64,000 nucleotides of DNA from IMGVR_UViG_3300027759_000045:1-64000; one strand, 5' to 3'; numbered from the stretch's first letter, positions 12,248 to 62,660 are shown. The notes: generated by a model from the letters alone, not told the origin. Made by a program: numbers and translations.

Positions 12248-12278
12248 AGAAGTATAGTAAGTAAAAAGGAGTTAAAAA

Positions 12279-12557: not shown

Positions 12558-12558
12558 T

Positions 12559-12792: not shown

Positions 12793-12813
12793 CAAATCCC
12801 CGTTTGCTACAAT
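12785..12813 (+). promoter_or_regulatory. Sigma70-type promoter
   Basis: ggTTGACT-17nt-TACAAT. Confidence 0.7.
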
Positions 12814-12842
12814 ACTTGTATAGAAATTAAAAAGGATTTCAA

Positions 12843-13201: not shown

Positions 13202-13229
13202 TTTTGGCAAACCAGAATACACTTTGTGG

Positions 13230-13258
13230 TTGACAATCTAAACAAGATCAACTACAAT
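13230..13258 (+). promoter_or_regulatory. Sigma70-type promoter
   Basis: ggTTGACA-17nt-TACAAT. Confidence 0.7.
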
Positions 13259-13327
13259 ATGTATATGTTGAGCAGTAAGGCACAGCATTTTTTTAAACTT
13301 AGATAGGCAACATTAAAAGGCAACATT

Positions 13328-13675
13328 ATGACAGAAAAACTCTTTACAGTGGCAGGTACCGCAACTAACGCAGATGGTACCACAAAGGCTCGTTTTGCTA
13401 ACGACTTGGTGGCTCGCATCAAGATCCTCAACAAGGCCAAATGCACTGCCATTAACTTGGTAGAGCTGCCCCATGCAATGACCAAGCTCGAGGCTCTGCA
13501 GTTCTTGCAGGACACACAGGGCTACACAGGTGACGCCAGTTACGCTGTGGCTAACAAATTGGCTGAGAAAACCAAAGTCGCTAAAAAAGGCGAAGTTACA
13601 ATCTCTGCCAAGAGTGCCAAGCCCAGCAAGAGCACAGTGACTGCCAAGCAATTGGTAGAAGCTGCCAAAGCCTAA
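13328..13675 (+). CDS. Hypothetical Lys/Ala-rich protein
   Basis: FTVAG..KARFAND, ELPHAMTK; own promoter and terminator. Confidence 0.7.
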   Translation: MTEKLFTVAGTATNADGTTKARFANDLVARIKILNKAKCTAINLVELPHAMTKLEALQFLQDTQGYTGDASYAVANKLAEKTKVAKKGEVTISAKSAKPSKSTVTAKQLVEAAKA

Positions 13676-13693
13676 ACAACTTGGGCACAACAC

Positions 13694-13717
13694 AAAGCGG
13701 CTTCGGCCGCTTTTTTT
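13694..13717 (+). terminator. Rho-independent terminator
   Basis: aaagcggc-ttcg-gccgc-ttttttt. Confidence 0.9.
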
Positions 13718-13739
13718 ATTAAGTGTTATAACTAATACT

Positions 13740-13979
13740 ATGCTAGACGACGACGAAAAACTAGATGAAGATATCCGTGCCCATGTGCTGAGTTTAATGT
13801 ATGTACTTTATGAGTACGGATTACGAGACGTTCACATGGGAGGCCTGTTGCGCATACTGGGAGTGCCAGATACCGTGGCCGCAGGGTTTGATGACCGGGT
13901 ATTGGGACTAGATGCTGACTTTGCTAAGTATATGAACGACATTCAGTCGGGCAGAGACTTGAGCCAAACACTACATTAA
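13740..13979 (+). CDS. Hypothetical protein
   Basis: ORF 5 nt after TAACTA. Confidence 0.6.
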   Translation: MLDDDEKLDEDIRAHVLSLMYVLYEYGLRDVHMGGLLRILGVPDTVAAGFDDRVLGLDADFAKYMNDIQSGRDLSQTLH

Positions 13980-14224
13980 TGACCGTACCCTCCTACAAAA
14001 GCAACACCGCACTTTATATCATAGCACTGAGAGATGATGATGCCAAAAGCAAACTCACTAAATGGGTAAACTCGCATTCCAATGCCAGTGCCCGAGTTGA
14101 GGAGCATCGTCTCCAAATTTACGATCAAAACACCTTGAACCTTTTTGTGGTATCCTGGACTCACGGTATCGGCAACCTTACAGTTTGGGATTGTTGGAAT
14201 CGGCGACATATCTACTTAGATTAG
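13979..14224 (+). CDS. Hypothetical protein
   Basis: TAATG coupling. Confidence 0.6.
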   Translation: MTVPSYKSNTALYIIALRDDDAKSKLTKWVNSHSNASARVEEHRLQIYDQNTLNLFVVSWTHGIGNLTVWDCWNRRHIYLD

Positions 14225-14253
14225 TTGACACACAGAAAAAAATGCTGTATACT
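14225..14253 (+). promoter_or_regulatory. Sigma70-type promoter
   Basis: TTGACA-17nt-TATACT. Confidence 0.7.
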
Positions 14254-14299
14254 GTACACAGTGTTAAGTAAACACGTTATAACTTTTAAAGGAACAAAA

Positions 14300-14491
14300 A
14301 TGACACAACATGAACAAATCGTAGCCGCTTATGAATCTTACCTCGCTGAAAACGAGAAGTTTACTGCCAAAGGTGTTAAGGCCGCTGCCGCTCGTGCCCG
14401 CAAAGCACTACAGGAAATGAGCAAAGGCATCAAAGAACGCCGCAAAGAAATCACAGCAGAAAAAGAAGCCCTGGCCACCACTGCCAAGTGA
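14300..14491 (+). CDS. Histone H1-like (Hc1-family) small basic protein
   Basis: KGVKAAAARARKALQEM...ERRK motif; AAGGA SD. Confidence 0.7.
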   Translation: MTQHEQIVAAYESYLAENEKFTAKGVKAAAARARKALQEMSKGIKERRKEITAEKEALATTAK

Positions 14492-14495
14492 TCCA

Positions 14496-14660
14496 ATGAA
14501 CACACGCACCGTGCAAGTGGTCGAAGATCCGGAAAATCCGGAAGAGCTACTTCTGGATCTAGGCAATGAATTATGTGCCGAACTTGGGTGGCAAGTCGGC
14601 GACACAGTTACATGGACAGATAACAAGGACGGCACATGGACTCTACACAAAAACAACTAG
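14496..14660 (+). CDS. AbrB/MazE-like small protein (54 aa; not in ORF track)
   Basis: ELLLDLGNELCAELGWQVGDTVTW swapped-hairpin pattern. Confidence 0.6.
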   Translation: MNTRTVQVVEDPENPEELLLDLGNELCAELGWQVGDTVTWTDNKDGTWTLHKNN

Positions 14661-15127
14661 ATCTATGGGACTATGGTACTGATACCATTACCATTACCGG
14701 TAGCGGATCGTCTGGCAATGTGTTAACAACCGATACCATTGATCTGAGTTCACTAGACTTGAGCAGTACATTTGATTATAGTAGTTTATCAAACACTATT
14801 ATAAGCCAGTCTCATACCGGAAGATACACCTATGACACAGGTATGTCTCCTAACCTGACTGTAGGCACATCAATTAATACCAGTGGCACAATAGATCTGC
14901 GTGGCGACAATGCTGACATTGTGGTAAACGGTGTCAGCCTGATGGACAAACTTGATGCCATTGCTGAGCGTCTTAACCTGTTAGACGTCAACAAAGAACT
15001 TGAAGCAGAATGGGATCAACTTCGAGAGCTGCGTGAACGCTATCGACAACTTGAGCAAGATCTCAAAATCAAGTCGGCGATGTGGAAAACACTAAAAACC
15101 AAAACGCCCAGTAAACCGCGCAGTTAA
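14636..15127 (+). CDS. Hypothetical protein (S/T-rich N-terminus, coiled-coil C-terminus)
   Basis: 163 aa ORF. Confidence 0.6.
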   Translation: MDSTQKQLDLWDYGTDTITITGSGSSGNVLTTDTIDLSSLDLSSTFDYSSLSNTIISQSHTGRYTYDTGMSPNLTVGTSINTSGTIDLRGDNADIVVNGVSLMDKLDAIAERLNLLDVNKELEAEWDQLRELRERYRQLEQDLKIKSAMWKTLKTKTPSKPRS

Positions 15128-15194
15128 CGGCAAAAGTGTTTCGTTTCAGCCCGGTTTGTCCGGGGATCTACAACCATTGAGTAAGTACAAGCCT

Positions 15195-15773
15195 ATGGAA
15201 ACAAACTTAATTTTTAAAAATATCGACTTCGTACCTTGGCTCTCGCGAGCGTTAAAGACTGTGGGATTGGCTGGAGTGGCAATCGCAGTAGTAGCAGTTT
15301 GCCAAGCACGACTAGACAACCTGCGACTAGCACAGAATAACATGCCGCCTGGATATGTCACTGCCGCAGAACAGACACGTCAGTTAGAATGCCTAACTCG
15401 CAACATCTATTGGGAAGCTGCATCAGAGCCATTTGAAGGCAAAGTAGCAGTGGCCCAGGTCACACTGAATCGCATGCAATCGGGCAAGTTTGCAGATTCA
15501 GTCTGTGGAGTTGTACATCAAAAGAATGTGTTCTACGAAAAGGTAGTATGCCAATTTTCCTGGTACTGCGAAGGCAATCACAAAGTAAAAGCCATACACA
15601 AACCCATGTGGCGCGAATCTGAAGAAGTGGCCAAGAAGGTCTTGCTTGAGGGATTTAGATTACCCAGTTTGCATAAAGCACTGTACTATCATGCAGACTA
15701 TGTAAACCCCGGATGGAAACATCCTAAAATTGAAAAAATTGGTCGTCATATTTTTTACGGAGAACGCTCATGA
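15195..15773 (+). CDS. Cell wall hydrolase (SleB/Hydrolase_2 family)
   Basis: CLTRNIYWEA.SEP..GKVAVAQV.LNR, CQFSW, YYHADYVNP.W, IGRHIFY. Confidence 0.9.
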   Translation: METNLIFKNIDFVPWLSRALKTVGLAGVAIAVVAVCQARLDNLRLAQNNMPPGYVTAAEQTRQLECLTRNIYWEAASEPFEGKVAVAQVTLNRMQSGKFADSVCGVVHQKNVFYEKVVCQFSWYCEGNHKVKAIHKPMWRESEEVAKKVLLEGFRLPSLHKALYYHADYVNPGWKHPKIEKIGRHIFYGERS

Positions 15774-16066
15774 ACATCGAATCAGTACGCAACTTTCTTT
15801 CCACAACCCTTACCAAAATCTCTGCAGAAACACTGGGTTGGTTGGCAGCCATTGTAATCCACGCTGCCACTATTCCTACCCTGCTGGCCTTGATGACTGG
15901 ACTGAGTGATCGTACACCCAATTTGGATGTTGTACTGTTTGCCTGGGCCGGGCTGGTATTACTGTTCTTTAGAGCAGTGGTGCTCAAAGATTTATTAAAC
16001 ATCATCACAATTGGCCTGGGTTTTATTATCCAAGCCGTGTTGATGGCTTTGATTCTTTTTAAATGA
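15770..16066 (+). CDS. Small multi-pass membrane protein
   Basis: Three hydrophobic segments. Confidence 0.65.
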   Translation: MNIESVRNFLSTTLTKISAETLGWLAAIVIHAATIPTLLALMTGLSDRTPNLDVVLFAWAGLVLLFFRAVVLKDLLNIITIGLGFIIQAVLMALILFK

Positions 16067-16788
16067 CCATACCCAACTTTGTGGTACTAGACAGCATACA
16101 TGGTCGGTTTATTGTGAACCGACACTGTGCTTTCCAAGCTGAAGCACTGGTCAAAACAGGTGCCACCCACATCGAAGGTGAACTTGCCAACATCTTTGTG
16201 TTGATAGATACCTTGCCCACAGGTGCTGTGATCATTGATGGTGGCGCCAATGCTGGATTCTTTACTATCCCAGTGGCCAACAGAATCCGTGGCCGCGGGC
16301 AACGAATCATCAGCTTTGAACCGCAACTGACACTGTTCCGTGCGCTGTCTGGCAGCCTGGCCTTGAACGACATTGACTTTTGTGATTTACGCTATGCTGG
16401 ACTTGGTGATGCACCTGGCACAGCTCGGGTTCCGGATATCGATTACGGAACACCACAGGACTTTGGCACAGTACAGATCAGTGCAACCGGTTCTGGCACA
16501 CCTGTTGAAGTTACAACGATTGACAGCTTGGGATTGGAACGTGTAGACTTTATCAAGTTAGATGTAGAAGGCTACGAGTGTGCCGCATTGGCCGGCGGAA
16601 TTGGTATGATCCAACAGCACCGGCCCTACATCTGGATAGAGTTCTTTATCACCGGCAAGGAACCAATTAAGGCTAGTTTGGCTGGAGTGCCAGATTACGC
16701 CTTTTTCCAAGTGGATTACCAAAACATGCTGTGTATTCCAAGAGAACGCTTGCCCGAAATTAAGTTTTCCGGCGTGGCCGAATGCTAG
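16063..16788 (+). CDS. FkbM-family SAM methyltransferase
   Basis: IDGGANAG, SFEPQ, FIKLDVEGYE. Confidence 0.85.
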   Translation: MTIPNFVVLDSIHGRFIVNRHCAFQAEALVKTGATHIEGELANIFVLIDTLPTGAVIIDGGANAGFFTIPVANRIRGRGQRIISFEPQLTLFRALSGSLALNDIDFCDLRYAGLGDAPGTARVPDIDYGTPQDFGTVQISATGSGTPVEVTTIDSLGLERVDFIKLDVEGYECAALAGGIGMIQQHRPYIWIEFFITGKEPIKASLAGVPDYAFFQVDYQNMLCIPRERLPEIKFSGVAEC

Positions 16789-16817
16789 TTGACTATTAAA
16801 TCTTGGTGTGCTATAAT
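16789..16817 (+). promoter_or_regulatory. Sigma70-type promoter
   Basis: TTGACT-17nt-TATAAT with extended TG. Confidence 0.75.
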
Positions 16818-16843
16818 ACTAGCATGATTAACAGAGTTCAATT

Positions 16844-17083
16844 ATGACCAATACTAAAAAACCAATGAAGGTAGAATTTGCTCCCGGAGCCCTTGATCAT
16901 CTTGACGTGGAGGATCAAGCAGAACTGGATGCTGTGATGAAAGAAATTACAGAAATGTTTGCCAACATGACGCCAGAAGAACTTGAAGCACAGAGTCGTC
17001 CCATTGACTGGGACAGTCTTGATGACGAAGAACGTGTTATCCTCGAGCAGGCAATCAACAATGAACCAAGGAAACTACAATGA
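16844..17083 (+). CDS. Hypothetical acidic protein
   Basis: 79 aa ORF. Confidence 0.6.
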   Translation: MTNTKKPMKVEFAPGALDHLDVEDQAELDAVMKEITEMFANMTPEELEAQSRPIDWDSLDDEERVILEQAINNEPRKLQ

Positions 17084-42858: not shown

Positions 42859-43332
42859 ATGTCGCAACTTGCATGGATGTTTAGTTTAATTCCAGATTTT
42901 ATTTTTGTACTCATTGCCTGGGCCGCTGCTGTAGGCGGGGTTGGACTATTTTTAGCCAGCAAAGCAGTGCGTTGGATTCCCGGTATTGCACTGTACCGAA
43001 CACCTGCTGAGTTAGCAGGCGTTGTGTTGTTGGTCATTGGTGCCTGGATGCTGGGCGGGCAAGCTGCCGATGCACGTTGGCAAGCAAAAGTTGTAGAAGT
43101 TGAAGCAAAGTTAAAAATTGCCGAAGAACAATCTGTTGTTGCCAACACAGAAATAGAAACCAAAACCCGAGAAACAATCAAATACATTCGTGGTCGCACA
43201 GAGATTGTTAAACAATATGTTGACCGCGAAGTGGTCAAGTACGACACCAAGTTCATGCCAGGCGGCATTTGTGAAATACCTCGAGAATTTGTCAAGGCAC
43301 ACAATGATGCCGCAGAAGGACCTAAAAAATGA
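42859..43332 (+). CDS. Putative inner-membrane spanin (Rz-like)
   Basis: N-terminal TM helices, coiled coil, C-terminal Cys; lysis context. Confidence 0.6.
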   Translation: MSQLAWMFSLIPDFIFVLIAWAAAVGGVGLFLASKAVRWIPGIALYRTPAELAGVVLLVIGAWMLGGQAADARWQAKVVEVEAKLKIAEEQSVVANTEIETKTRETIKYIRGRTEIVKQYVDREVVKYDTKFMPGGICEIPREFVKAHNDAAEGPKK

Positions 43333-43901
43333 GAGCTAATGAATTTGTAACTGAAGAACCCAGAACAGCGGCCCCAAAGCCCGAAATAGTATCAGTACAG
43401 GACGATGGCAAAACGATCACAATTAAAGTACGCGGCCATGACGGGGCTGTGCGAGCAATTGCAAATTCGAACCCAGCGGTGTTACAACAACAGTTGAATC
43501 TCAAATACGGGCTAAGACTGCCACACAGCATTGCTAAAAAGTTTGCAGGAATGCCAGCTGCAATGGCCGAAGATCAAGCAGACAATCCCGACAGTTGGCA
43601 GTCACAGGCAGCAGATGCCGAACGTGATGAAGAAACTGCTAAGATGGCTGCGCAAGATGCTGAGGCAGGTGGATTGGCAGAAGAACAACTAGACGAAAAA
43701 AGTACTAGCCAAGCACAGTTCCGCACAATGGCAGCAGCCGCACACAATCCCAAGTTTGCCAAGAAAGTTGGCATCAGCCCGGATGTGGCTCGAGAATTCC
43801 ACGGTGCTGATCGTAAACAAAATTATAAATCATTGCCCCGGAAAGCCGCAGAAGACGCATCCTGGGGAATGGCACCCGAAAGTCGAGGCTACAAGAAATG
43901 A
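43329..43901 (+). CDS. Putative virion internal protein
   Basis: MRANEFVTE leader; QAQFRTMAAAAHNPKFAKKVGI module. Confidence 0.55.
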   Translation: MRANEFVTEEPRTAAPKPEIVSVQDDGKTITIKVRGHDGAVRAIANSNPAVLQQQLNLKYGLRLPHSIAKKFAGMPAAMAEDQADNPDSWQSQAADAERDEETAKMAAQDAEAGGLAEEQLDEKSTSQAQFRTMAAAAHNPKFAKKVGISPDVAREFHGADRKQNYKSLPRKAAEDASWGMAPESRGYKK

Positions 43902-48731: not shown

Positions 48732-51020
48732 ATGCAAAATAATCCTGAAATTGAAAAAATTGTCAACAATGCTGTGGCCATTGCAAAAGCTCACAATCAT
48801 GCTTATGTGATAACCGAACATGTACTGATGGCAATGATTCAACACGCACCATTTCGAGCATTGTTGGTGAAATATGGCACAGCCGTTGAACAGTTCGAAG
48901 GCGAACTAAGTGCATATATTCTAGCGCAGGTTAGTTTAATAACCAGCAAAGAAGATGTTACACCTCGCAAAACCAATGGCCTTGAGCGCATGTTTAATCG
49001 TGCGCTGACACAGGTACTGTTTACCGGACGCAGATCAATCACATTGCTGGATCTGTACCTGGCCATGATGGCAGAAAATAACAGCCATGCACATTACTTT
49101 TTGTTGAAGTATGGCGTTCACAAAACTGAATTTGCTGAGTTCTATCAGAAAAATCATGCCTCTGCCTCTAAAGAGTTGAGCAATGAAACTGCAAACGAAA
49201 TCCTGGATCAACACTGTACAAATCTAAGCAAACGAGCTGCCGACGGACAATTAGAACCCATGATCGGCCGGGCCGCAGAACTGGAAGAAATGATCACTGT
49301 GTTGGCTCGCAAGTTCAAGGCCAACGTGCTGATGGTGGGCGATCCTGGTGTGGGCAAAACTGCCATCATTGACGGACTAGCACAGGAGATCAACGCTGGC
49401 CGTGTTCCAGAGTTTCTTAAAGGTTCTGAAGTTTGGGGATTAGAGATTGGTTCGCTGTTGGCTGGCAGCAAATACCGTGGTGAGTTTGAAGAAAAGTTCA
49501 AAGACGTTATCTCTGCACTGGAAACTAAAAAGAACTGTGTGCTGTTTATCGACGAAGCGCACACCATGATGGGCGCAGGAACTTCGGGATCAAGCAGTTT
49601 AGACTTTGCCAACATGATCAAACCAGCAATTACCAAGGGCAACATCAAGGTAATTGCGAGTACCACATGGGAAGAATACTACGAGAGCTTTGAAAAAGAT
49701 CGTGCGCTGATGCGCAGATTCCACAGAGTCAATATTGGTGAGCCTGATTCAGCCACCACAGAGCAAATTCTAATTGGCATTAGCCCGCGTCTAGAAACAT
49801 TCCACAATGTACTGATTGACACAGAAGCAATGACAGCGGCTGTGGAATTGAGTGGACGCTACATTCATGATCGTAAGAATCCTGACAAGTCAATCGACCT
49901 GTTGGATGGCGCCTGTGCTGGAGAGCGTGTGAAAGACCTGGGCACAGTTACCATCAACCGTGACATGATCATGGCGCAACTCAGTCGTGTTACCGGAGTT
50001 CCTTTAGATAGATTGCAAAACGAACGCAGTACCAAGGTTACCGAGCTGGAAGGTAACATCAAGCAGTTCTTATACGGGCAAGACCAAGCCATTGACACTG
50101 TGCTAGAACGTATCTACATCAACTTCTCCGGCATTGGCAATGCTAAAAAGCCTGTGGCCAGTTTCTTGTTCCTGGGTCCAACCGGCACAGGTAAAACAGA
50201 ACTGGCCAAACTGCTGTCGCAAAATCTAGACATGCACCTGTTGAAATATGACATGAGTGAGTTCCAAGAGAAGCACAGCATTGCCAGTTTGATTGGTGCC
50301 CCTCCTGGATACGTGGGCTTTGATGACGGCAACGTGGGCGGCGGCAAGTTGATCAGCGACATTTCCAAGCACCCGTTCAGTATCCTGTTGTTTGACGAAA
50401 TTGAAAAGGCACACCCAGATGTGGTCAACATCATGTTGCAGATGCTGGATGAAGCCCGGATCACTGGCAGCAGTGGCAAGTCAGTGGATGTCAAGAACTG
50501 TATCATTATTATGACCAGTAACCTAGGTGCCAGAGACAATGAAAACAACAACATCGGCTTTGGTCAGTCGTTAGAAAAGACCGGCGAAGAAGACCGTGCT
50601 ATGAAAGAGTTCTTCAAGCCGGAACTGCGCAATCGCATTGACAAGGTGTGCAAATTCAACAAGTTAGACAAGCTAGCCATCAAGAAGATTGTGGTCAAGT
50701 TCACAGCAGAGTTACAAGAAACACTGTTGAACAAGAACATTCGTCTTACATTTGCTGAAGATGTGATCGACATGCTGGCAGACAAAGGCTACGATCCCAA
50801 GATGGGTGCTCGTCCATTGGGTCGCAAGATTGACGAACTGATCCGTGTACCACTTAGTAAGCGTATCTTGTTTGATCAAATTGCTGACTGTGCAATTCAT
50901 GCCAGTATGGTCAATGATACAGTGGAATTCACAACCACATCATTGCTGACTGTGCCTGGCCCAGGCGTCAACGACGAAGGATACATTGTAATTGATCAAT
51001 TTACACCCAACATTCAATAA
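48732..51020 (+). CDS. clpA: ClpA-like ATP-dependent chaperone
   Basis: Two AAA+ modules (GDPGVGKT, GPTGTGKT), KYRGEFEE, IGF loop, no ClpB middle domain. Confidence 0.88.
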   Translation: MQNNPEIEKIVNNAVAIAKAHNHAYVITEHVLMAMIQHAPFRALLVKYGTAVEQFEGELSAYILAQVSLITSKEDVTPRKTNGLERMFNRALTQVLFTGRRSITLLDLYLAMMAENNSHAHYFLLKYGVHKTEFAEFYQKNHASASKELSNETANEILDQHCTNLSKRAADGQLEPMIGRAAELEEMITVLARKFKANVLMVGDPGVGKTAIIDGLAQEINAGRVPEFLKGSEVWGLEIGSLLAGSKYRGEFEEKFKDVISALETKKNCVLFIDEAHTMMGAGTSGSSSLDFANMIKPAITKGNIKVIASTTWEEYYESFEKDRALMRRFHRVNIGEPDSATTEQILIGISPRLETFHNVLIDTEAMTAAVELSGRYIHDRKNPDKSIDLLDGACAGERVKDLGTVTINRDMIMAQLSRVTGVPLDRLQNERSTKVTELEGNIKQFLYGQDQAIDTVLERIYINFSGIGNAKKPVASFLFLGPTGTGKTELAKLLSQNLDMHLLKYDMSEFQEKHSIASLIGAPPGYVGFDDGNVGGGKLISDISKHPFSILLFDEIEKAHPDVVNIMLQMLDEARITGSSGKSVDVKNCIIIMTSNLGARDNENNNIGFGQSLEKTGEEDRAMKEFFKPELRNRIDKVCKFNKLDKLAIKKIVVKFTAELQETLLNKNIRLTFAEDVIDMLADKGYDPKMGARPLGRKIDELIRVPLSKRILFDQIADCAIHASMVNDTVEFTTTSLLTVPGPGVNDEGYIVIDQFTPNIQ

Positions 51021-54364: not shown

Positions 54365-55267
54365 ATGGCTGAAGAACAAAACGTAACAGGCAAAATGCCA
54401 GATGTTGTGCCCACAACAGAAATTCCATCAACACCACAACAGGTGGGTGGGCAACAACAGATACAAGTAAACATTGATTACTTAAAAACCACAAGAGTTC
54501 ACATTTGTATGCCATGTTACGGCGGTATGTTGACTGAGTCAACATTTATGAGCTACATCAAATGGTCAAACACAGCCCGCCAACTAGGCATTGACTGGAC
54601 CATGGAAACACTCACAAACGAAAGTTTGATCAGTCGTGCTCGCAACACCATGGTGGCCAAGTTTTTGGCCAACCCTGACTCAACACACTTGATGTTTGTA
54701 GATGCTGATATTGGCTGGGAGCCATGGCACCTGTTGGTCATGTTGAACCGTGACGTGGACGTTATTGGCGGATTGTACCCAATGAAAAGCCTGCCAATCA
54801 AGTGGTGTGTGAATGGATTTGATGGTGCCGAAGAAGGTGCAGATGGCCTGCAAGAAGTTAGTAAAACAGGCACAGGTTTCTTCTTGGTCAAGCGGCATGT
54901 GTTTGACAAGTTAAATGCACACCCTGCAACCAAGCCGTTTATCAACGACATTGGCTTGCCAGTGGAACTTAATCCCTATATGAAAACCTACTTTGACACA
55001 GCAGTGCGTGAAAATCGCTACTATTCAGAAGACTGGACATTCTGTGAAAACTGGCGTGACCTAGGTGGTCGTGTCTGGGTTGACAAACGTGTGTTACTAC
55101 GTCACACTGGCACATACACATTTGCACATGAAACACAAGAGAAACTGATCACTGATGTTACACCAATGGTTGAAGCACGACAAGTTGCCGCTAGAGCCGC
55201 TGCCGTGCCTGCGCCAGCTGAAACCAAAGTGTTGGCATCAAACAAAAAAGCCAGCAAAAAGAAATAA
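54365..55267 (+). CDS. GT-A fold (family 2-like) glycosyltransferase
   Basis: SLISRARN, FVDAD, GTGF.L, SEDWTFC, L.H.G. Confidence 0.75.
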   Translation: MAEEQNVTGKMPDVVPTTEIPSTPQQVGGQQQIQVNIDYLKTTRVHICMPCYGGMLTESTFMSYIKWSNTARQLGIDWTMETLTNESLISRARNTMVAKFLANPDSTHLMFVDADIGWEPWHLLVMLNRDVDVIGGLYPMKSLPIKWCVNGFDGAEEGADGLQEVSKTGTGFFLVKRHVFDKLNAHPATKPFINDIGLPVELNPYMKTYFDTAVRENRYYSEDWTFCENWRDLGGRVWVDKRVLLRHTGTYTFAHETQEKLITDVTPMVEARQVAARAAAVPAPAETKVLASNKKASKKK

Positions 55268-55290: not shown

Positions 55291-55317
55291 AAAAGCCACT
55301 TTGCCCAGTGGCTTTTT
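55291..55317 (+). terminator. Rho-independent terminator
   Basis: aaaagccact-ttgccc-agtggcttttt. Confidence 0.85.
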
Positions 55318-55340
55318 CATTTGCGCTAAATATTACAATC

Positions 55341-58300
55341 ATGAATATTTCTGAACTAGATTCCTACAACCTTGCTGATGCTGTTAAATTTAATGAACAG
55401 TTGAACCCACGTATCTGGCAGGGCAATAAAATGCGCCCACAGGTGCGGGCCACGCTGTTAAAAATTGCTGAAGACTTTAAACAAAGTTTGGGGATTGGCG
55501 ATTTGAACGTCAAAGACATCACCTTGTCCGGCAGCAATGCTGGTTACACATATACTCCACATAGTGACATAGATCTACACCTGGTGGTGGACCTACCCGA
55601 AGCAGATGTGAGTGAAGTGTATCGCGAGTTGTTTGATGCTAAAAAGTTTCAGTACAACGAAACACACAATATCAAAATTGGTGGCTACGATGTAGAACTC
55701 TATGTGGAAAACGCCAACAAATCGGCAGTGAGTCAAGGCATATTCAGTGTGCTGAATAACGACTGGATCAACATTCCACTGAAAAAACGTTCTACAATAA
55801 ACGACACTGCGGTCAAGAGCAAGTACGATGTGATCAAGCATCGCATTGAATCAGCAGTGAAATCTGGCAGTCTAAAACGACTGACCAACACTGCTGCCAA
55901 GATTAAAAAGATGCGTCAAGCCGGACTTGATCAGCACGGTGAACTGGGTCCAGAAAACATTGCGTACAAGATGTTGCGTTCACAAGGTGTTATACAACAA
56001 CTGTATGATGCCAGAACCAAGGCCAAAGATCGAGCACTGAGTCTTAAAGAACGGTCTATTGAAATTGATAAACCATTTAAATTCACCTACGGATTCAAAG
56101 CCACAGAAGATGTTGGTGCTTCATGGGATGGAGTAAGTCCCACAACACAGATGTTCTTGAATGAAGAACCCAAGTCAGATGAAGATATACTCACAGACTT
56201 TGTGGAGTTTTGTGTTGCAGAACTAGAGATTGAACAGATGCCACGTGTTCGCCTGCGTAAAGATCCGCAGTGGCCTGTGCGGCACAAGACGTTTGGTCGC
56301 TACAACGACAATGAAAAAATGTTAGAAGTGGCCTGGGGTCAACGACACATCATGGATGTGTTGCGCACAGTGGCACATGAACTCACACACAAGCATCAAC
56401 ACGAACGTGATGGCAGTGATATGGGATCTGACGCAGGTGAAACTGGCAGTCCTTACGAAAACGAAGCCAATGCTCGTGCCGGTGTACTCATGCGTGACTA
56501 TGCCAAACTGCACCCGGAACATTTTGCCGCCGGCCAAACAGATGATTTAGCAGAAGCATCAGGATACATCCCCACAAAGAAGCAGGCAAAGGACCCACGC
56601 TTTAGCATGGCCTTGACTCGAGATGTACGTCCAGGTGCGGTGGGTAAGGAAGCAAACAAACTAGGACTAAAGACTGACAATCAAGGACATCCAGGATTGT
56701 TAATGACTGGTTTGGCCAATGCACTGCGTGAGTTTAAAGAAACTGGGCAGATGCCGCTGATATACGAAGATGAGTTGTTTGAAATCAACATGAGCACAGG
56801 TAGCTTACGTCGCGAAGCTGCCAAGACCGGCGCTATTGCTGGCATGGAATTTGAAATGATTGTGCCCAATGTGGAAGGTGGCGACGATGATGGCCAACAG
56901 GAACCTGATTATGAGTATGACGAAGGTGTTAGTAGTATCCAAGACGCATATGACTTCTTCTACGACGGTGATTACAACAGCCGAGGTGATGTTACTCGAC
57001 TGCGTGAGAAGATGCAAAATGAATATTACGAATGGCTAGGTGAGTCGTTTGATACTCGTTGGGACGGTGACGAGTCAGAGTTTGTGTACAACTACCTTAA
57101 AGAAAACGCCAGTGCAGATGAAATTGCAGAAATACTAAGCACAGAACCCGACGCAGACGGTGAATACCCAGAGCCTGATAAACAGGCATATCGCGATGCC
57201 ACAGAAAAAGTTGTCGAAGAAAGCTACGGCAACTACTGGTATGATGCAGCACGTGAAAGTGCGCAGGAAGATTTTAATCAGAATGCAGACCTAGAATCAG
57301 AATGGTTAGAAGATCGAGACTTGAACCGCATGTCAGACATTGAAAATGAATACAACATGAGTTGGCCGCACTGGCAGTCAATGGGCAATGGTGGCGAAGC
57401 CAGCATCGAAGATGTTGCCCAAGAGTTTGAAAATGCCATAGACCGTCCTGTTCAAGCCAGCGGTAACTATCACTCCGGCGGCGTGCGAAGACCCAGCCCA
57501 ACAGCACAGCACTATCTAGTAGAACCTGATGGCAGTTTAGAAGCCAATGACAGCGATGATGTAGGCCTAGAGTTTGTAAGTCCACCTTTGCCTATTGACG
57601 ATATATTAAGTGACTTGAACAAAGTCAAGGCCTGGGCCAAACAATACGGATGCTACACCAACGATTCAACAGGCCTACACATCAACATCTCAGTGCCGGA
57701 CTACAGTAGAGAAAACTTGGACTTTGTTAAACTAGCTCTGTTAATGGGCGACGAGTATGTGCTGGACAACTTTGGTCGTGCTGGCAATACCTACGCTAAA
57801 TCAGCAATGAAATTAGTACGCGATCAAGTGCGCACTAAACCCGACGAAGCTGAACGTTTGTTGGATAAAATGAAAGGCAACCTGGACAGTTTGGCAAGCA
57901 AGGCCATACACTCGGGCGTGACCAGCAAGTACACCAGTATCAACACCAAGGACGGACATATTGAATTCCGCTCACCCGGTGGTGACTGGTTAGATGACAA
58001 CTTTGACAAGATTGAAAACACATTATTGCGTTTTACAGTGGCCATGAGTGCGGCTCTAAATCCAGAAATGTATCGCGAAGAATACCTGAAGAAACTGTAC
58101 AAGTTGTTGACACAGGACAACAAGGGTTCTGACACCATCAAGTACTTCAGTGAATATGTAGCAGGCAAGATTCCTGCAGCCGCACTGCGTAGTTTTGTTA
58201 AGCAGGCACAGTTGGAACGCAAGTTGAAGAAAGATCCAACAGGCGGTGAAAAATATTGGTGGAGTGTTCGTAGTCCTGGCAATAGCAATGCTGGTATAGA

Positions 58301-59072
58301 AGTTGTTGCCTCATCTAAAGAAGAAGCAATTGAAAAAGCCATTGGTGGTTATCCAAGTTGGGCTAACTATCGAAGTTCGTTGGTTGCCAAGCCAATGCGT
58401 CCATATGAACAATCTGCAAAAACTGTTCGCTACGAAATCTACAACAAACAGACTGGCAACTCAGTAGAGGATGCCGATGGAATTACCAATGATGAAGAGG
58501 CATTGGTTCGTCTCAATGATTATATTGAACACGGTCCGCATAGCCTACAACGAGGCCAGGCCACTGCTATGTTTGGTATACGTACTACCGGTGGAGTTGG
58601 AATTGTTGATATAGACATGCCAATAGCCCAGGGTCGTGCTGCCACAAGCCCAACTGGACAGTGGAAAATGATTGACGGATTAAATCGTGAATTATATCGT
58701 TTCCGTCCTGCAGAAAACACAAGAACAAGAGCCAATTACTTGGCAAGAGTATGGGCAGAAACACATAACTTTGACGGTAACTATCAAGTTGATCCAGTGG
58801 AAGAAAACGATGTGGTGCCGCAACCGGACGTGATCCCGCTACAGCAACCAACACCCGTTCCAGGCAGTACCGCAGACCTAGCACAACGCCGAGCACAAGG
58901 TGGCGAGTTTACCGGTGCTTGGAAGATTGTAGATTCTGATGGTAATGAACTGCATAGATTTTCCGGCATAGGCAATCAACAGCGTGACGCTAATCGTGTG
59001 GCCACACAGTGGTTGACCGACAATGGCTACAGCTATGGCACAGATGTCACTGTGCTACCAATAGTGAGTTAA
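55341..59072 (+). CDS. Polyvalent protein: Pol-beta-type nucleotidyltransferase + zincin metallopeptidase + amidoligase (COOH-NH2 ligase) + C-terminal repeats
   Basis: GSNA..SDIDLH; AHELTH..Q..ENEANA; GMEFE, DGSL, LEFVSP, TGLHINIS, KY.SIN, IEFR. Confidence 0.75.
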   Translation: MNISELDSYNLADAVKFNEQLNPRIWQGNKMRPQVRATLLKIAEDFKQSLGIGDLNVKDITLSGSNAGYTYTPHSDIDLHLVVDLPEADVSEVYRELFDAKKFQYNETHNIKIGGYDVELYVENANKSAVSQGIFSVLNNDWINIPLKKRSTINDTAVKSKYDVIKHRIESAVKSGSLKRLTNTAAKIKKMRQAGLDQHGELGPENIAYKMLRSQGVIQQLYDARTKAKDRALSLKERSIEIDKPFKFTYGFKATEDVGASWDGVSPTTQMFLNEEPKSDEDILTDFVEFCVAELEIEQMPRVRLRKDPQWPVRHKTFGRYNDNEKMLEVAWGQRHIMDVLRTVAHELTHKHQHERDGSDMGSDAGETGSPYENEANARAGVLMRDYAKLHPEHFAAGQTDDLAEASGYIPTKKQAKDPRFSMALTRDVRPGAVGKEANKLGLKTDNQGHPGLLMTGLANALREFKETGQMPLIYEDELFEINMSTGSLRREAAKTGAIAGMEFEMIVPNVEGGDDDGQQEPDYEYDEGVSSIQDAYDFFYDGDYNSRGDVTRLREKMQNEYYEWLGESFDTRWDGDESEFVYNYLKENASADEIAEILSTEPDADGEYPEPDKQAYRDATEKVVEESYGNYWYDAARESAQEDFNQNADLESEWLEDRDLNRMSDIENEYNMSWPHWQSMGNGGEASIEDVAQEFENAIDRPVQASGNYHSGGVRRPSPTAQHYLVEPDGSLEANDSDDVGLEFVSPPLPIDDILSDLNKVKAWAKQYGCYTNDSTGLHINISVPDYSRENLDFVKLALLMGDEYVLDNFGRAGNTYAKSAMKLVRDQVRTKPDEAERLLDKMKGNLDSLASKAIHSGVTSKYTSINTKDGHIEFRSPGGDWLDDNFDKIENTLLRFTVAMSAALNPEMYREEYLKKLYKLLTQDNKGSDTIKYFSEYVAGKIPAAALRSFVKQAQLERKLKKDPTGGEKYWWSVRSPGNSNAGIEVVASSKEEAIEKAIGGYPSWANYRSSLVAKPMRPYEQSAKTVRYEIYNKQTGNSVEDADGITNDEEALVRLNDYIEHGPHSLQRGQATAMFGIRTTGGVGIVDIDMPIAQGRAATSPTGQWKMIDGLNRELYRFRPAENTRTRANYLARVWAETHNFDGNYQVDPVEENDVVPQPDVIPLQQPTPVPGSTADLAQRRAQGGEFTGAWKIVDSDGNELHRFSGIGNQQRDANRVATQWLTDNGYSYGTDVTVLPIVS

Positions 59073-59073: not shown

Positions 59074-60060
59074 ATGCGAGCCAGTGAATTTTTAATCGAA
59101 TATAGAGATAGACTATTACAATATGTCAAGAGTCTGTTGCCCACTTGGCCTGAATATGTTCTCAAAGATTGGTTGGTGCCCAACAAAGGTGACTTTAGTA
59201 ATTTACCAGATACTGAACTTAAAAATGGTATAATGGAAAAATTAAAAGGACAAGGTCTTTCTCCGAGTACTAAATGGCAACTTGTACCCGATATGAAGTT
59301 TACAATGGACATGTTTGAGCCAATGACTACACAGCGATTGGTTGGTCGTGCAGGTGGCAAAAGTGATTTAGGCATGAAAATTCCAAAGGATGCCGAACGA
59401 CACGCTACACAAGCCGCCCTGGCACAACAGCAAGGCGGTGTGCGTAAAGAACCTGTGCTACTAATAAAAACAGCCAATGGATATGAACTATTAGAAGGTT
59501 GGCATAGAACAATACAGCACTTTGCTCGGTATCCTAATGGATATACAGGCCCTGCGTATGTGGCAGTGGCACAAGGTCAGCAAGGTGTGGCGGAAGGCTC
59601 GGAACATTACAATGGCATTGAAATCTCCATGGAAAAGGAAGATGATGAAATTATGGTAAAGGCAATAATGCCAGGCGGTCGCGAACTTGGACATGTATTA
59701 TTTGTACAAGAGGGTGATTACTTAATGCCACAAGATTTAGAAGTTGATGAACGCTATCAAGGCCAAGGCATTGCCGCCACAATGTACGACTATATAAAAA
59801 GCAAAGGATACAAGATACGCCGCAGTGGTCAACAAACAGATGCAGGTGCAGGCTTCTGGGACAAACATCGTCCTGAGCAAAACGTTTGGGAAAACTTTGC
59901 GGATGGCAAAAATCCTGGACGCAAAGGCTTGAGCAAGCGAGTGGGAATTCCTAAAAAAGCCACCTTGGGCAAACTGGAAAAGATTGCAAAGTCCAGCACA
60001 GGCGAACGCCGCAGGATGGCACAGTGGCAACTAAATATGAGACGAGGTAAGAAAAAATGA
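59074..60060 (+). CDS. Multi-module protein: ParB-like + GNAT acetyltransferase + basic tail
   Basis: EPVLL..LLEGWHR; V...YQGQGIA..MY, QT.AG..FW. Confidence 0.65.
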   Translation: MRASEFLIEYRDRLLQYVKSLLPTWPEYVLKDWLVPNKGDFSNLPDTELKNGIMEKLKGQGLSPSTKWQLVPDMKFTMDMFEPMTTQRLVGRAGGKSDLGMKIPKDAERHATQAALAQQQGGVRKEPVLLIKTANGYELLEGWHRTIQHFARYPNGYTGPAYVAVAQGQQGVAEGSEHYNGIEISMEKEDDEIMVKAIMPGGRELGHVLFVQEGDYLMPQDLEVDERYQGQGIAATMYDYIKSKGYKIRRSGQQTDAGAGFWDKHRPEQNVWENFADGKNPGRKGLSKRVGIPKKATLGKLEKIAKSSTGERRRMAQWQLNMRRGKKK

Positions 60061-60381
60061 GATCAAGTGAATTCGTATTTGAAAAGTGGAGCGAAAAATA
60101 CAAAAGCAGTATTAACTGTAGCCACCCTCGAGGCTTTTCACAAAAAGCACACTGTGCCGGTAAAAACAAACAGAATGAATCAGTTGAGATGGAAATGGTG
60201 TGCGAAGATTGTGGCATGTGTGAAACACATGGCAATGTAAATGAAATTAAAAAAGGTGCTAAAGACTCAAATGGCTATACCCGTTGCTGGCCTGGCAAAC
60301 ATGCTGAAGGCACCAAAAAGGGCAAGAATGGCGGACAAGTTCGCAACTGTGTGCCCAATGAATCGCAAGGTGTGGCGGAAG
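59580..60381 (+). repeat. 17-bp direct repeat GCAAGGTGTGGCGGAAG (59580-59596 and 60365-60381)
   Basis: Identical copies, both encoding QGVAE at module junctions. Confidence 0.8.
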
Positions 60382-60794
60382 AATTATCAAAAGAGTTTGA
60401 TCTTATTGAAAGTATCATCGAAGGTATTGCTGAGCACAATGGTGTAGATGCCGAAACAGTATGGGAGGACCTAGAAAGCCTGACTGAAGATGAACTGTAT
60501 GCGTTTGCTGTGACTTCGCAACTGAACGAAGACTGGCAAAAGGCCAACAAGCGAGACAAGACCGATGGCATGAGCCAAAAGGCTGTGAATGCTTATCGCA
60601 GAGAGAATCCCGGATCGAAACTAAAGACTGCTGTGACCACTAAACCTTCGAAGCTAAAGAAAGGCTCTAAAGCCTCCAAGCGCAGATCAAGCTATTGCTC
60701 ACGCAGCCGTGGACAAATGAAAATGCATAGTATCTCATGTGCCAAAACTCCAGACAAAGCCATCTGCAAAGCACGACGTCGTTGGAACTGCTGA
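60057..60794 (+). CDS. Putative virion internal multi-module protein
   Basis: MRSSEFVFE leader; SINCSHPRGFSQKAHC, CWPG..NCVP, YRRENPGSKL..SYC.RS modules. Confidence 0.6.
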   Translation: MRSSEFVFEKWSEKYKSSINCSHPRGFSQKAHCAGKNKQNESVEMEMVCEDCGMCETHGNVNEIKKGAKDSNGYTRCWPGKHAEGTKKGKNGGQVRNCVPNESQGVAEELSKEFDLIESIIEGIAEHNGVDAETVWEDLESLTEDELYAFAVTSQLNEDWQKANKRDKTDGMSQKAVNAYRRENPGSKLKTAVTTKPSKLKKGSKASKRRSSYCSRSRGQMKMHSISCAKTPDKAICKARRRWNC

Positions 60795-60982
60795 TGAAGG
60801 TCAAAGAAGTCGTTAAAAGTGCAAAGCAATGGACTGCCAAGGTGCGTGTTCAGAATCCTGGATATGTGGGCTGGGTCGATGCAGTGGTCTGGGCTCCTAA
60901 CACTCATGTGGCCAGACAAATGATCAAAGCACAGTACCGAATTGAAGATTGGCACGTGGGCTCAATCAAAGAACTGCGTTAA
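60794..60982 (+). CDS. Hypothetical protein
   Basis: TGATG coupling; MKVKEVV. Confidence 0.55.
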   Translation: MKVKEVVKSAKQWTAKVRVQNPGYVGWVDAVVWAPNTHVARQMIKAQYRIEDWHVGSIKELR

Positions 60983-61683
60983 CTACGTAAGCGAGCCAGT
61001 CCTACTAGTCTAAATACACCAAGCCACATCCATCCTGCATCAAATTCAAACCAACGACGACTCAGTCTAGGGTTAGCAGGATCCAGATGATGGTTATTAT
61101 GCAGGCATTCCCCACCAACAACAATATCCCAAGGCACAATGTTTCTGCTGTGATCTTTAGTTTCGCCATTTCTATATCCCCACCAATGTCCAATGCCGTT
61201 GATAACTCCGGCCGCCCACCAAGGTATCCATGCCATTTGTATACCCCAAATCAGCACTCCCCACACACCAAACAACGCAACATCGATCGCAAGCATTAAT
61301 AAGATGCCTAGTCTGCTGTGGCGAGTGTAAACGTTGCGTTCAATCCAGTCATCCGGTGTGCCTGCGCCATACTGTGCAACCATCTCTGCGTCTCGGCTGG
61401 CTGAGTGATACAGGCCTGCACCTTTAAACAATACACGCCCAATTCCGTATACGTGTGGGCTGTGCGGATCACCTTCTGCATCACTGAATCTGTGATGCTT
61501 GCGATGGATAGCTACCCATTGCTTTGTAACCATGCCTGTGGTGAGCCATAGCCAGGCTCGCATGAAGTGTTCCAGTACAGGAGTAAAAACGATACCGCGA
61601 TGTGCTTGGCCACGGTGTAGGTACAATGTAACACAGATTATGGTAATGTGTGTGACTATTAAGGTATAGATAAGTTCTGTCAT
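60979..61683 (-). CDS. Membrane fatty-acid (delta-9-type) desaturase
   Basis: His boxes HRGQAH, HRKHH, HNNHH; GDPHSP. Confidence 0.9.
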   Translation of the reverse strand: MTELIYTLIVTHITIICVTLYLHRGQAHRGIVFTPVLEHFMRAWLWLTTGMVTKQWVAIHRKHHRFSDAEGDPHSPHVYGIGRVLFKGAGLYHSASRDAEMVAQYGAGTPDDWIERNVYTRHSRLGILLMLAIDVALFGVWGVLIWGIQMAWIPWWAAGVINGIGHWWGYRNGETKDHSRNIVPWDIVVGGECLHNNHHLDPANPRLSRRWFEFDAGWMWLGVFRLVGLARLRS

Positions 61684-61751
61684 AGTGTATTTAAGTAAAA
61701 CTATTGCCAAATTGCTAATTTAACTATACAGTTAACGGCACTAAATACAGC

Positions 61752-62033
61752 ATGAAACAGTTTATTCGTGTGCTATGTGACGTTGATTGTGCTTGGGCAG
61801 GTACTGAGCCAGTGTATCGCGTTTATGTTGATGACGAATTATTTGCTGAAAGAACCTGGCGCTGGCAAGATGTGTATCTAGAAGAAATGATACAGATCGA
61901 AGCAGAGCCGGGAGAATATGTAATCAGTTATGAACTTGTTGATTCTCCCGGTGCCACGCTACGTGTGTCAAACATGCGTGTGGATTATGGTCCCGGAAGA
62001 ATTAAAGGAAATCTACTAAAGATACTCACATGA
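61752..62033 (+). CDS. Hypothetical late protein
   Basis: YRVYVDDELFAERTW; TAAATA-4nt-ATG. Confidence 0.65.
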   Translation: MKQFIRVLCDVDCAWAGTEPVYRVYVDDELFAERTWRWQDVYLEEMIQIEAEPGEYVISYELVDSPGATLRVSNMRVDYGPGRIKGNLLKILT

Positions 62034-62230
62034 GAGCTCAGGAATTTATCAAAGAAAATGCGTCAGTTGGTGCCACCAGTTCCGGCAGCGTTGCCACAGT
62101 GGCCATGCCCATGGGTGGCATGCAGTCAAGAAATCCCGATAGTTTCTTTTCTGGTAAATATACAAATGACCCTTTTCCCAACACACCGAAAAGTATGAGA
62201 AAGAAAGCAAGGAAAACAAATGTTAAGTGA
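62030..62230 (+). CDS. Small putative virion protein
   Basis: MRAQEFIKE leader; GATSSGSVA. Confidence 0.55.
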   Translation: MRAQEFIKENASVGATSSGSVATVAMPMGGMQSRNPDSFFSGKYTNDPFPNTPKSMRKKARKTNVK

Positions 62231-62660
62231 TTTACTAAAGACCTATTTGGCCAGTACATTTTCGTACTATTTGAAGGCACACTATTTTCATTGGAATGTG
62301 GAAGGACCTGACTTTGGTGAATTACATGAATTCTTTTCCAACATCTACGAAGATGCCTATTCAGCTGTGGATCCCATTGCTGAGTACATCCGTACCACAG
62401 AAGAATATGCTCCTGGCAGTCTCAGCCGCTTTTTAGAACTAACACAAGTACCAGATCAAACCAAAGTGCCACGTGCTCGTTTGATGCTGGAAGAATTACT
62501 CGCAGACACCCAAATAATGATCAACCTTAGCCGCCAAGTTTTCGAAGCCAGTGCTGCCGAAGGTCGTGAAGACATTGCAAACTTTGCCGCAGAACGCCAA
62601 AGCCAACACGGCAAGTATCAGTGGCAACTGAAAAGTTACTTGAAGGACGCGAGGGCATAA
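62220..62660 (+). CDS. dps: Dps/ferritin-like protein
   Basis: KAHYFHWNVEG..F..LHEFF..IY, D.IAE.IR, H.K..WQL. Confidence 0.9.
   Translation: MLSDLLKTYLASTFSYYLKAHYFHWNVEGPDFGELHEFFSNIYEDAYSAVDPIAEYIRTTEEYAPGSLSRFLELTQVPDQTKVPRARLMLEELLADTQIMINLSRQVFEASAAEGREDIANFAAERQSQHGKYQWQLKSYLKDARA

Follow-up and report, generated by a model that had tools for sequence, protein, structure and literature searches.

The 1243-residue protein encoded at positions 55341-59072 (+) of the analysed window, a 64,000-nucleotide stretch of DNA (IMGVR_UViG_3300027759_000045:1-64000) from the 347-kb genome (44 % G+C) of a T4-superfamily jumbo phage, joins three predicted enzymes and four small repeat units in one chain, and indirect comparative evidence alone suggests that it is packed into the phage head, cut at its joints and delivered into the host together with the DNA. 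The initial annotation had described one protein with nucleotidyltransferase, metallopeptidase and amidoligase motif sets separated by Glu-ending linkers, an acidic insert within the ligase and two C-terminal repeats, and this observation was confirmed. Its interpretation, an injected polyprotein processed into separate host-modifying enzymes, was partly supported, since profile, fold and family evidence supports the domain calls and the polyvalent architecture, while injection and processing rest on several independent but indirect lines.

The gene is one open frame from the ATG at 55341 to the stop at 59070-59072, without internal stop. The linker strings were located at aa 272 (FLNEE), 402 (DLAEA) and 479 (LFEI), and the two repeat strings at aa 1105 and 1116 and at aa 1191 and 1202. 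The features of the locus are as follows.

55291..55316 (+), 10-bp hairpin with a 6-nt loop, followed by a weak U tract
55327..55335 (+), TAAATATTA, late-promoter-like motif starting 14 nt before the ATG
55341..56051 (+), aa 1-237, predicted Pol-beta-type nucleotidyltransferase (NTase) module, with the N-terminus M-N-I-S-E-L carrying a nearly invariant I-x-E-L, and ending at L-K-E237
56052..56165 (+), aa 238-275, variable linker with low model confidence, ending in F-L-N-E275
56166..56555 (+), aa 276-405, minimal zincin-like metallopeptidase with H346-E-x-x-H350 and E373, ending in D-L-A-E405
56556..56783 (+), aa 406-481, strongly conserved peptide (S-G-Y-I-P ... D-P-R-F ... K-E-A-N-K-L) predicted without stable structure, pI 8.3, flanked by the two main insertion hot-spots and ending in the invariant L-F-E481
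56784..58226 (+), aa 482-962, glutamine-synthetase-like amidoligase (Amidoligase_2), with first strand G-M-E-F-E-M (aa 501-506)
56859..57410 (+), aa 507-690, conserved acidic insert between the first strand and the rest of the ligase, pI 4.05
58227..59069 (+), aa 963-1243, four predicted beta-beta-alpha-beta units (about aa 972-1021, 1031-1082, 1108-1152 and 1190-1242)
59074..60060 (+), adjacent 328-aa gene starting M-R-A-S-E-F-L-I-E, with a GNAT-like domain
60057..60794 (+), 245-aa gene starting M-R-S-S-E-F-V-F-E, with a basic DUF6321 C-terminus
62030..62230 (+), 66-aa gene starting M-R-A-Q-E-F-I-K-E followed by N-A-S-V-G
43329..43901 (+), 190-aa gene starting M-R-A-N-E-F-V-T-E, the fourth leader-bearing gene in the window

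For the NTase module, the Pfam model NTP_transf_2 (PF01909) matched aa 41-106 slightly below its cut-off (E 9e-4, 20 bits against 21), phrog_36119 matched with E 9e-37, and the residues G64 S65 ... D76 x D78 and E119 are invariant in the family. Stand-alone viral homologues of 230-265 aa end at the same point as the module, and the atlas neighbours are viral NTP_transf_2 clusters, while the profile search of the PDB gave only a hit with E 0.68. For the peptidase, Peptidase_M78 matched aa 343-405 below the cut-off (E 4.5e-3) and H346, E347, H350 and E373 are invariant. The AF2 model (pLDDT 83-93 for aa 279-389) shows a helix, three strands and two helices, as expected for a zincin-like core, and nearly all of the top structural matches are zincins, including YbeY, Wss1, ERAP1, SPRTN, selecase and PprI (VIA Z 9.2-7) and minigluzincins and IrrE (Foldseek). 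Among family members, Pfam hits in this region were DUF6782 (22/72), M78 (14) and SprT (9), and no Pfam model reached its cut-off.

The peptide at aa 406-481 showed conservation of 0.7-0.8 with invariant columns, and the model confidence was low (pLDDT 41-63 for aa 400-479). For the ligase, Amidoligase_2 (PF12224) matched aa 688-882 above the cut-off (E 1e-7, 32.5 bits against 22), and E503 x E505, E728, E744, H780 and E875 x R877 are invariant. The acidic insert (27 % D+E over aa 480-700) is conserved across the family. Sequence and profile searches of the PDB with the NTase, the linker-peptidase region and the ligase gave nothing useful, and no PDB relative of the ligase was found by sequence. 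The last two C-terminal units, which are the repeats of the initial annotation, are homologous (hhalign 98.6 %, E 1e-15), but the AF2 model shows four units rather than two. Their copy number varies from 1 to 6 in relatives, and a Foldseek search of the PDB with the four-repeat model gave no credible match.

The protein belongs to a family of more than 1765 metagenomic proteins on contigs up to 361 kb, whereas nucleotide and protein searches of cultured phage genomes returned no full-length relative and only stand-alone NTase or amidoligase genes. New modules are inserted at the linkers, with insertions at aa 255, 402, 478, 1029, 1084 and the C-terminus, and ten relatives carry a 60-70-aa insertion in the linker at aa 238-275. 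The C-terminal additions vary and include GH19 lysozyme-like, deaminase, ADP-ribosyltransferase (ART) and ParB domains, which match the repertoire of phage-type polyvalent proteins (PMC5512222). The number of [LI]xE sites in the protein is at chance level (14 observed against 12 expected), and none occurs in aa 727-1243, where 3.95 are expected. However, the sites at 3, 235, 273 and 479 are nearly invariant in 121 relatives, and sites 402 and 478 are the insertion hot-spots of the family.

The same genome encodes a gp21-type prohead protease (Peptidase_S77, 87 bits, 204450-204905 of the genome, in the gene at 204405-205052), located between the gp68-like and scaffold-like genes, and a gp23-type capsid protein, in the T4 order portal-67-68-21-22-23. 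The capsid protein has L-K-E / N-A-S at the place homologous to the T4 cut, and the 66-aa gene at 62030 copies this inferred cleavage context, L-K-E / N-A-S-A-G.

In a split-gene relative (locus L042), the stand-alone amidoligase gene, 46 % identical to the ligase of the fusion, starts M-R-A-L-E-F-L-N-E / I-A-M, which aligns with L-F-E / I-N-M at aa 479-484, and the peptidase, ParB-like and GNAT-like genes carry the same leader (M-R-A-x-E-F-[LIV]-x-E), while the conserved peptide forms the C-terminal tail of the NTase gene. Six family members have E-F-L-G-E at this joint, and the stand-alone amidoligases of phages RsoM2USA and Atu_ph07 have L-x-E-L-x-M after a 6-10-residue N-terminus, with L-T-E13 followed by L14 in Atu_ph07 gp196. 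The leader resembles the T4 capsid-targeting sequence (CTS) MKTYQEFIAE, next to which the T4 internal proteins are cut once (PMC8442874). T4 Alt, which starts M-E-L-I-T-E-L, loses 6 residues at I-T-E6 (PMC5694885), and the family N-terminus M-N-I-x-E-L resembles the start of Alt. Leader-bearing genes lie directly downstream in 31 of 48 related loci, three lie just downstream in the window, and six were found in the genome against 0.002 expected. The C-terminal 60-150 aa of the adjacent 328-aa gene product are fused inside or at the end of polyvalent proteins of relatives.

The motif TAAATA lies within about 35 nt upstream of 67 of 410 gene starts, against 1 % of random 35-nt windows. The 9-mer TAAATATTA occurs 9 times in 347 kb, and 5 of these lie within 40 nt upstream of a start, including those of portal (201484) and tail sheath (237770). 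The exact T4 late promoter TATAAATA has only 8 copies in the genome, and the enriched motif is the shorter TAAATA[TC]. However, the distance of only 14 nt from the motif to the ATG implies a very short or absent leader RNA. In addition, the stand-alone amidoligase homologue gp196 of Agrobacterium phage Atu_ph07 was detected in the virion proteome with 14 peptides and 30 % coverage (PMC6102473 Table S5), although this proteome came from PEG-purified particles and lists 131 proteins, including a topoisomerase subunit, so some entries may be carry-over.

Other observations speak against packaging and cleavage. The protein starts M-N-I-S-E-L-D and has no CTS-like leader at its N-terminus, and a profile of 42 leader sequences scanned along it found no significant internal copy (best score 6.4 against a 95 % shuffle level of 7.8), indicating that the joints are not whole leader copies and that only the LxE-[LI]-x-M part aligns. 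The conserved LxE could simply be part of the N-terminal helix of the ligase fold, [LI]xE is not enriched overall, four partly conserved sites lie inside the acidic insert, and the L-A-E405 site is not uniformly [LI]xE in relatives. The gene also lies 145 kb from the head module, among ClpA-like, cytidylyltransferase and phosphoesterase genes, but T4 alt is likewise outside the head cluster.

Taken with moderate confidence, the gene is predicted to encode a polyvalent head-internal (ejection) protein, in which modules that a related phage type (loci L042-L045) encodes as separate genes, each with a CTS-like leader, are fused. In this view, the gene would be transcribed late from its own TAAATA-type promoter, the protein would enter the prohead core, and the gp21-type protease would cut after Glu at the conserved [LI]xE sites marking the module borders, with L-F-E481 as the best-supported site, followed by I-S-E5, L-K-E237 and L-N-E275, and with L-A-E405 less conserved. 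The protein's own peptidase may help or act later, and the pieces would leave with the DNA and modify host targets early in infection. The domains and their conserved catalytic residues (the ligase from sequence alone, the NTase only as a prediction from sequence), the modular family, the protease and head module, the leader family, its alignment with the joint and the promoter-like motif were established by the analysis, while packaging, cleavage, ejection and every biochemical activity are inferred, for this uncultured phage, from comparison alone.

Polyvalent proteins and T4 internal proteins are two known ways for phages to bring ready-made weapons into the cell, but how the large fusions enter the head and are taken apart remains conjecture. 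This family offers a concrete, testable link, since the same modules occur either as separate genes with a T4-like targeting leader or fused, with the leader's cut site kept at the joint, in genomes that encode the matching protease. It also places an uncharacterised amidoligase, an NTase and a minimal zincin among candidate first-minute host-modifying enzymes of abundant uncultured jumbo phages, and the short leader could serve as a packaging tag. A further, tentative possibility is that the internal proteins of this widespread group form an exchangeable pool of modules, each carrying a capsid-targeting leader, and that gene fusion turns the leaders into protease-cut joints, so that one polyprotein is loaded into the head and diced by the prohead protease into several enzymes, including a glutamine-synthetase-like amidoligase not previously linked to ejected effectors, plus the conserved 76-residue peptide.

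Among the alternatives, a cytoplasmic, non-packaged late multi-enzyme, whose three activities would work together in the infected cell, for example on a peptide, nucleotide or virion component, with joints that are structural only, is unlikely but survives best. The neighbouring genes encode enzymes (ClpA-like ATPase, cytidylyltransferase and metallophosphoesterase) rather than structural proteins, there is no N-terminal CTS-like leader and no significant internal leader copy, [LI]xE is at chance level, and phage amidoligases have been discussed as metabolic or cell-wall modifiers (PMC10580990). However, the variable C-terminal additions and free module shuffling do not fit one fixed pathway, a class-II glutamine amidotransferase (GATase) partner, as in phiEco32-type phages, is absent from the genome, the modules carry CTS-like leaders when encoded apart, and the Atu_ph07 homologue is found in virions.

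Less likely still, the protein is packaged and ejected but not cut by the prohead protease, either staying whole, like the N4 virion RNA polymerase, or being cut only by its own zincin peptidase after ejection. In polyvalent proteins the metallopeptidase (MPTase) is the proposed self-processing hub, and the N4 polymerase is packaged unprocessed (PMC5512222). The invariant catalytic residues of the peptidase and the unstructured peptide directly following it fit this view, and the nearest solved folds include zymogens. In these zymogens a C-terminal tail occupies the active-site cleft. On the other hand, the joint aligns with the leader cut site of the stand-alone genes, and the genome has a gp21-type protease and a matching site in the capsid protein. 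A late cell-envelope or lysis-associated enzyme acting on peptidoglycan is very unlikely, because, although GH19 occurs in 11 of 99 relatives, the gene has a late-promoter-like motif and a cell-wall role has been suggested for the phiEco32 amidoligase and GATase (quoted in PMC10580990), most relatives lack GH19, Pfam reports no signal or membrane feature for the protein and a TAT-signal hit for only one relative, and the ParB, deaminase, ART and NTase modules point to cytoplasmic targets.

Compared with the phage-type polyvalent proteins surveyed by Iyer, Burroughs, Anand, de Souza and Aravind in 2017 (PMC5512222), which carry many (2-15) functionally diverse domains, the protein has at least five module types, is built around a zincin MPTase combined with predicted protein- or nucleotide-modifying enzymes, and shows free shuffling of modules between relatives. 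The amidoligase is not mentioned in that survey, Pol-beta NTases were listed there only for conjugative-element proteins, and the likely cutter here is a gp21-type protease acting at leader-derived joints, rather than, or in addition to, the MPTase. Compared with the T4 internal proteins IPI-III and Alt, the T4 head gene order, the gp21 homologue and the M-[KR]-A-x-E-F-[LIV]-x-E start of neighbouring genes and split-gene modules are shared, but T4 internal proteins are small, single and basic, while this protein is a 140-kDa acidic multi-enzyme fusion.

The stand-alone amidoligases Atu_ph07 gp196 and RsoM2USA_26 share 30-32 % identity over the ligase core, an insert after the first strand and an N-terminal L-x-E-[LI]-x-M, but they are single-domain proteins of about 500 aa, and the insert is longer here (about 180 aa). 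Atu_ph07 gp196 lies two genes from the portal, and the adjacent gp195, an NTase, is not significantly similar to the NTase studied here (E 0.22). With the minimal zincins (the minigluzincins selecase and projannalysin, Wss1/SPRTN, IrrE/PprI and YbeY), a fold core of about 110 residues with HExxH and a downstream Glu is shared at a sequence identity of only 12-18 %.

The hairpin at 55291..55316 was not reported by the consensus terminator scan, but it folds with -13.8 kcal/mol (z -2.1), and it sits after the upstream gene (54365-55267) and may be a terminator that isolates the polyvalent gene as its own unit. A longer GTG start at 55308 lies inside this hairpin and is unlikely.

The frame at window 55341-59072 on the plus strand is a single open reading frame of 1243 aa. 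The initial annotation had described it as a polyvalent protein joining a nucleotidyltransferase, a metallopeptidase and an amidoligase, with linkers ending in Glu, an acidic insert within the ligase and two C-terminal repeats. This observation was confirmed, and all of the strings it named were present, at aa 272 (FLNEE), 402 (DLAEA) and 479 (LFEI), and, for the two repeats, at 1105/1116 and 1191/1202. A GTG start 33 nt upstream would lie inside a 10-bp hairpin that follows the previous gene, and because relatives and stand-alone homologues align from Met1, the ATG at 55341 was taken as the start. The following modules were assigned along the protein:

aa 1-237, predicted Pol-beta-type nucleotidyltransferase (NTase)
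aa 276-405, predicted minimal zincin peptidase
aa 406-481, conserved peptide predicted to be unstructured
aa 482-962, predicted amidoligase (Amidoligase_2), with a conserved acidic insert at aa 507-690
aa 963-1243, four beta-beta-alpha-beta units seen in the structural model

For the N-terminal module, Pfam NTP_transf_2 scored just under its cut-off, phrog_36119 gave E 9e-37, and G64-S65, D76-x-D78 and E119 were invariant in 63 relatives. Stand-alone viral proteins of 230-265 aa, from Maribacter phage Molly, T4-like cyanophages, Lak phages and an Atlas cluster of 1014 viral members, cover this stretch and end at its last Leu. In the peptidase module H346, E347, H350 and E373 were invariant, and the AlphaFold model had a pLDDT of 83-93 with a helix, three strands and two helices. 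Almost all of the top 50 structural matches were zincins (YbeY Z 9.2, Wss1 8.8, SPRTN 8.5, selecase 8.2, PprI 8.2), zincins were also matched in a Foldseek search, and weak Pfam hits across family members fell on DUF6782, M78, SprT and WLM.

The peptide at aa 406-481 (S-G-Y-I-P ... D-P-R-F ... K-E-A-N-K-L; window 56556-56783) is among the best-conserved stretches of the protein yet has low model confidence, and it could be a docking or targeting motif. The Amidoligase_2 hit was above the Pfam cut-off, and the acidic, His and Arg residues on the ligase strands were invariant. The acidic insert (pI 4.05) follows the first strand of the ligase, where stand-alone jumbo-phage amidoligases also carry an insert. 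Of the four C-terminal units, units 3 and 4 are homologous (hhalign 98.6 %), while units 1 and 2 are not detectably related, and no solved fold matched the model. The three predicted enzymes can be described only by their chemistry classes.

To place the protein in a family, a word-based search was performed and returned more than 1765 relatives, many of which are full length (1200-2080 aa) and lie on contigs up to 361 kb, and a scan of viral contigs added 48 loci. In an alignment of 121 proteins, long insertions occurred almost only after aa 255, 402, 478, 1029, 1084 and 1165 and at the C-terminus. The same module of about 110 aa occurred at both 402 and 478, and extra copies of unit 1 occurred at 1029. 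C-terminal extensions carried GH19 (11 of 99), cytidine-deaminase-like, ADP-ribosyltransferase, ParB, DUF6934 and a second NTase. This is the behaviour described for phage-type polyvalent proteins, whose hub is a zincin MPTase (PMC5512222), although that survey does not mention an amidoligase and lists Pol-beta NTases only for conjugative elements.

The window is the first 64 kb of a 346,856-bp virus record with direct terminal repeats (hereafter G000), which encodes a T4-type prohead protease (Peptidase_S77) and a gp23-type capsid protein. The nearest cultured relatives of the capsid protein are Phosso, Vibrio phage 2.275.O, PA5oct and Erwinia jumbo phages, at 64-72 % identity. The head genes follow the T4 order, namely portal, a 73-aa gene, an acidic 255-aa gene, the protease, a scaffold-like gene rich in [LI]xE, and then the capsid protein. 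The capsid protein has L-K-E / N-A-S-A-G at the place where T4 gp23 is cut, suggesting that the T4 cleavage rule (after Glu in [LI]xE) holds here.

[LI]xE was not enriched in the polyvalent protein (14 observed against 12 expected). However, five sites were nearly invariant in the family, at aa 3-5, 235-237, 273-275, 479-481 (121 of 121) and one in the ligase core, and the first four lie at module borders. The decisive comparison was provided by locus L042 (also L043-L045), a related locus in which the modules are separate genes. Its amidoligase gene begins M-R-A-L-E-F-L-N-E-I-A-M and aligns from its Leu7 with aa 479 of the fusion, L-F-E-I-N-M, at 46 % identity over 519 aa. The peptidase gene (M-R-A-N-Q-F-I-T-E), a ParB-like gene, a GNAT-like gene and another gene carry the same leader, and the NTase gene ends with the S-G-Y-I-P peptide as its C-terminal tail. 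The NTase gene of L042 (1805-3064) also carries an extra domain of about 130 aa (Y-H-V-T ... motif) that is absent from the window protein, and a similar stretch occurs in the 758-aa insertion of another relative, P0079.

In addition, six fused relatives have E-F-L-G-E at the 478 joint, and the stand-alone amidoligases of RsoM2USA and Atu_ph07 have L-x-E-L-x-M after 6-10 residues. The leader closely resembles the T4 capsid-targeting sequence MKTYQEFIAE, next to which the internal proteins are cut once (PMC8442874; PMC3012670; PMC5694885). In this genome six genes begin M-R-[AS]-x-E-F-[LIV]-x-E, against 0.002 expected, and they are candidate internal or ejection proteins:

window 43329-43901, leader-bearing gene
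window 59074-60060, leader-bearing gene that shares its C-terminal modules with fused relatives
window 60057-60794, leader-bearing gene
window 62030-62230, leader-bearing gene of 66 aa
G000 247028-247399, leader-bearing gene
G000 247396-247782, leader-bearing gene

Three of them (59074, 60057 and 62030) lie within 3 kb downstream of the polyvalent gene, and two of the six lie in the tail and structural region. In 31 of 48 related loci such genes lie on the same strand, mostly just downstream. The 66-aa gene continues I-K-E / N-A-S-V-G-A-T-S-S-G, which nearly copies the L-K-E / N-A-S-A-G-S-T-A-A-G of the capsid protein (G000 206174-207370) around its inferred maturation cut. The family N-terminus M-N-I-x-E-L recalls T4 Alt, which starts M-E-L-I-T-E-L and loses six residues at ITE-6 (PMC5694885), whereas stand-alone NTases of cultured phages lack that Glu.

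To examine the likely timing of expression, the sequences upstream of gene starts were compared. Strong sigma-70-type promoters (TTGAC, 17 nt, TGnTATAAT) precede clusters of small genes but not the polyvalent gene. At window 12013-17083, and also at G000 304-307 kb and 342-343 kb, near-identical promoters of this type (TTGACC ... TTTGCTATAAT) sit in front of runs of small genes of 60-130 aa, which are probably the early gene clusters. The motif TAAATA[TC] was enriched 8-15-fold upstream of starts, and 49 of its 125 copies lie within 40 nt of a same-strand start. It precedes 67 of 410 genes, against 1 % of random windows, and these include the portal, the tail sheath and other virion genes. Genome-wide, the motif lies 10-32 nt before many start codons (window examples 19893, 26125, 42859, 52687, 54365, 60057 and 61752) with two preferred distances, about 10-14 and 23-32 nt, of which the shorter would give nearly leaderless transcripts. 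The polyvalent gene has G-C-TAAATATTA-C-A 14 nt before its ATG, nearly the same as the portal and sheath versions, and this is read, by inference, as a late promoter related to the T4 TATAAATA.

Virion evidence was available from a relative, Atu_ph07 (locus L003), in which the amidoligase homologue AUZ94978 is gp196, as established from gene order and sizes relative to portal gp198. It was detected in the particle proteome with 14 unique peptides and 30.2 % coverage (PMC6102473, Table S5), but the particles were only PEG-purified and 131 proteins were listed, so this is supportive rather than conclusive. In that genome gp196 sits back to back with gp195, a different NTase (T4 GC1542), and gp196 is two genes from the portal (L003 5130-6122 and 3620-5122).

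The initial annotation had inferred an injected polyprotein processed into separate host-modifying enzymes, and this interpretation is partly supported: its domain assignments are correct at the level of predicted chemistry class, while injection and processing remain the best explanation, held with moderate confidence. The reading frame, the domain architecture, the conserved joints and the leader-bearing genes were observed in the sequences and their comparison, but packaging, cleavage, delivery into the host and the enzymatic activities are inferred from comparison alone. Against this reading, the fusion has no leader at its own N-terminus and a leader profile found no significant internal copy, the L-A-E405 site is not uniformly [LI]xE in relatives, and the conserved LxE may belong to the ligase fold. 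The gene also sits among enzyme genes far from the head module, although T4 alt also lies outside the head cluster. Polyvalent proteins and T4-type internal proteins are both known, and what is new here is their proposed combination in one protein.

Other genes of the window were as follows. A 762-aa ClpA-like double AAA+ ATPase (phrog_4871, E 5e-228) is encoded at 48732-51020 and is 39 % identical to that of PA5oct-type phages. A 146-aa protein at 62220-62660, next to the leader-bearing genes, matches phrog_3636, annotated as 'DNA binding protein' (E 3e-26). A fatty-acid-desaturase family gene (Pfam E 3.5e-14) lies at 60979-61710 on the minus strand inside an otherwise plus-strand block, and a tRNA-Met (CAT) gene at 3264-3339 is overlapped by a mechanically called ORF at 3216-3674.
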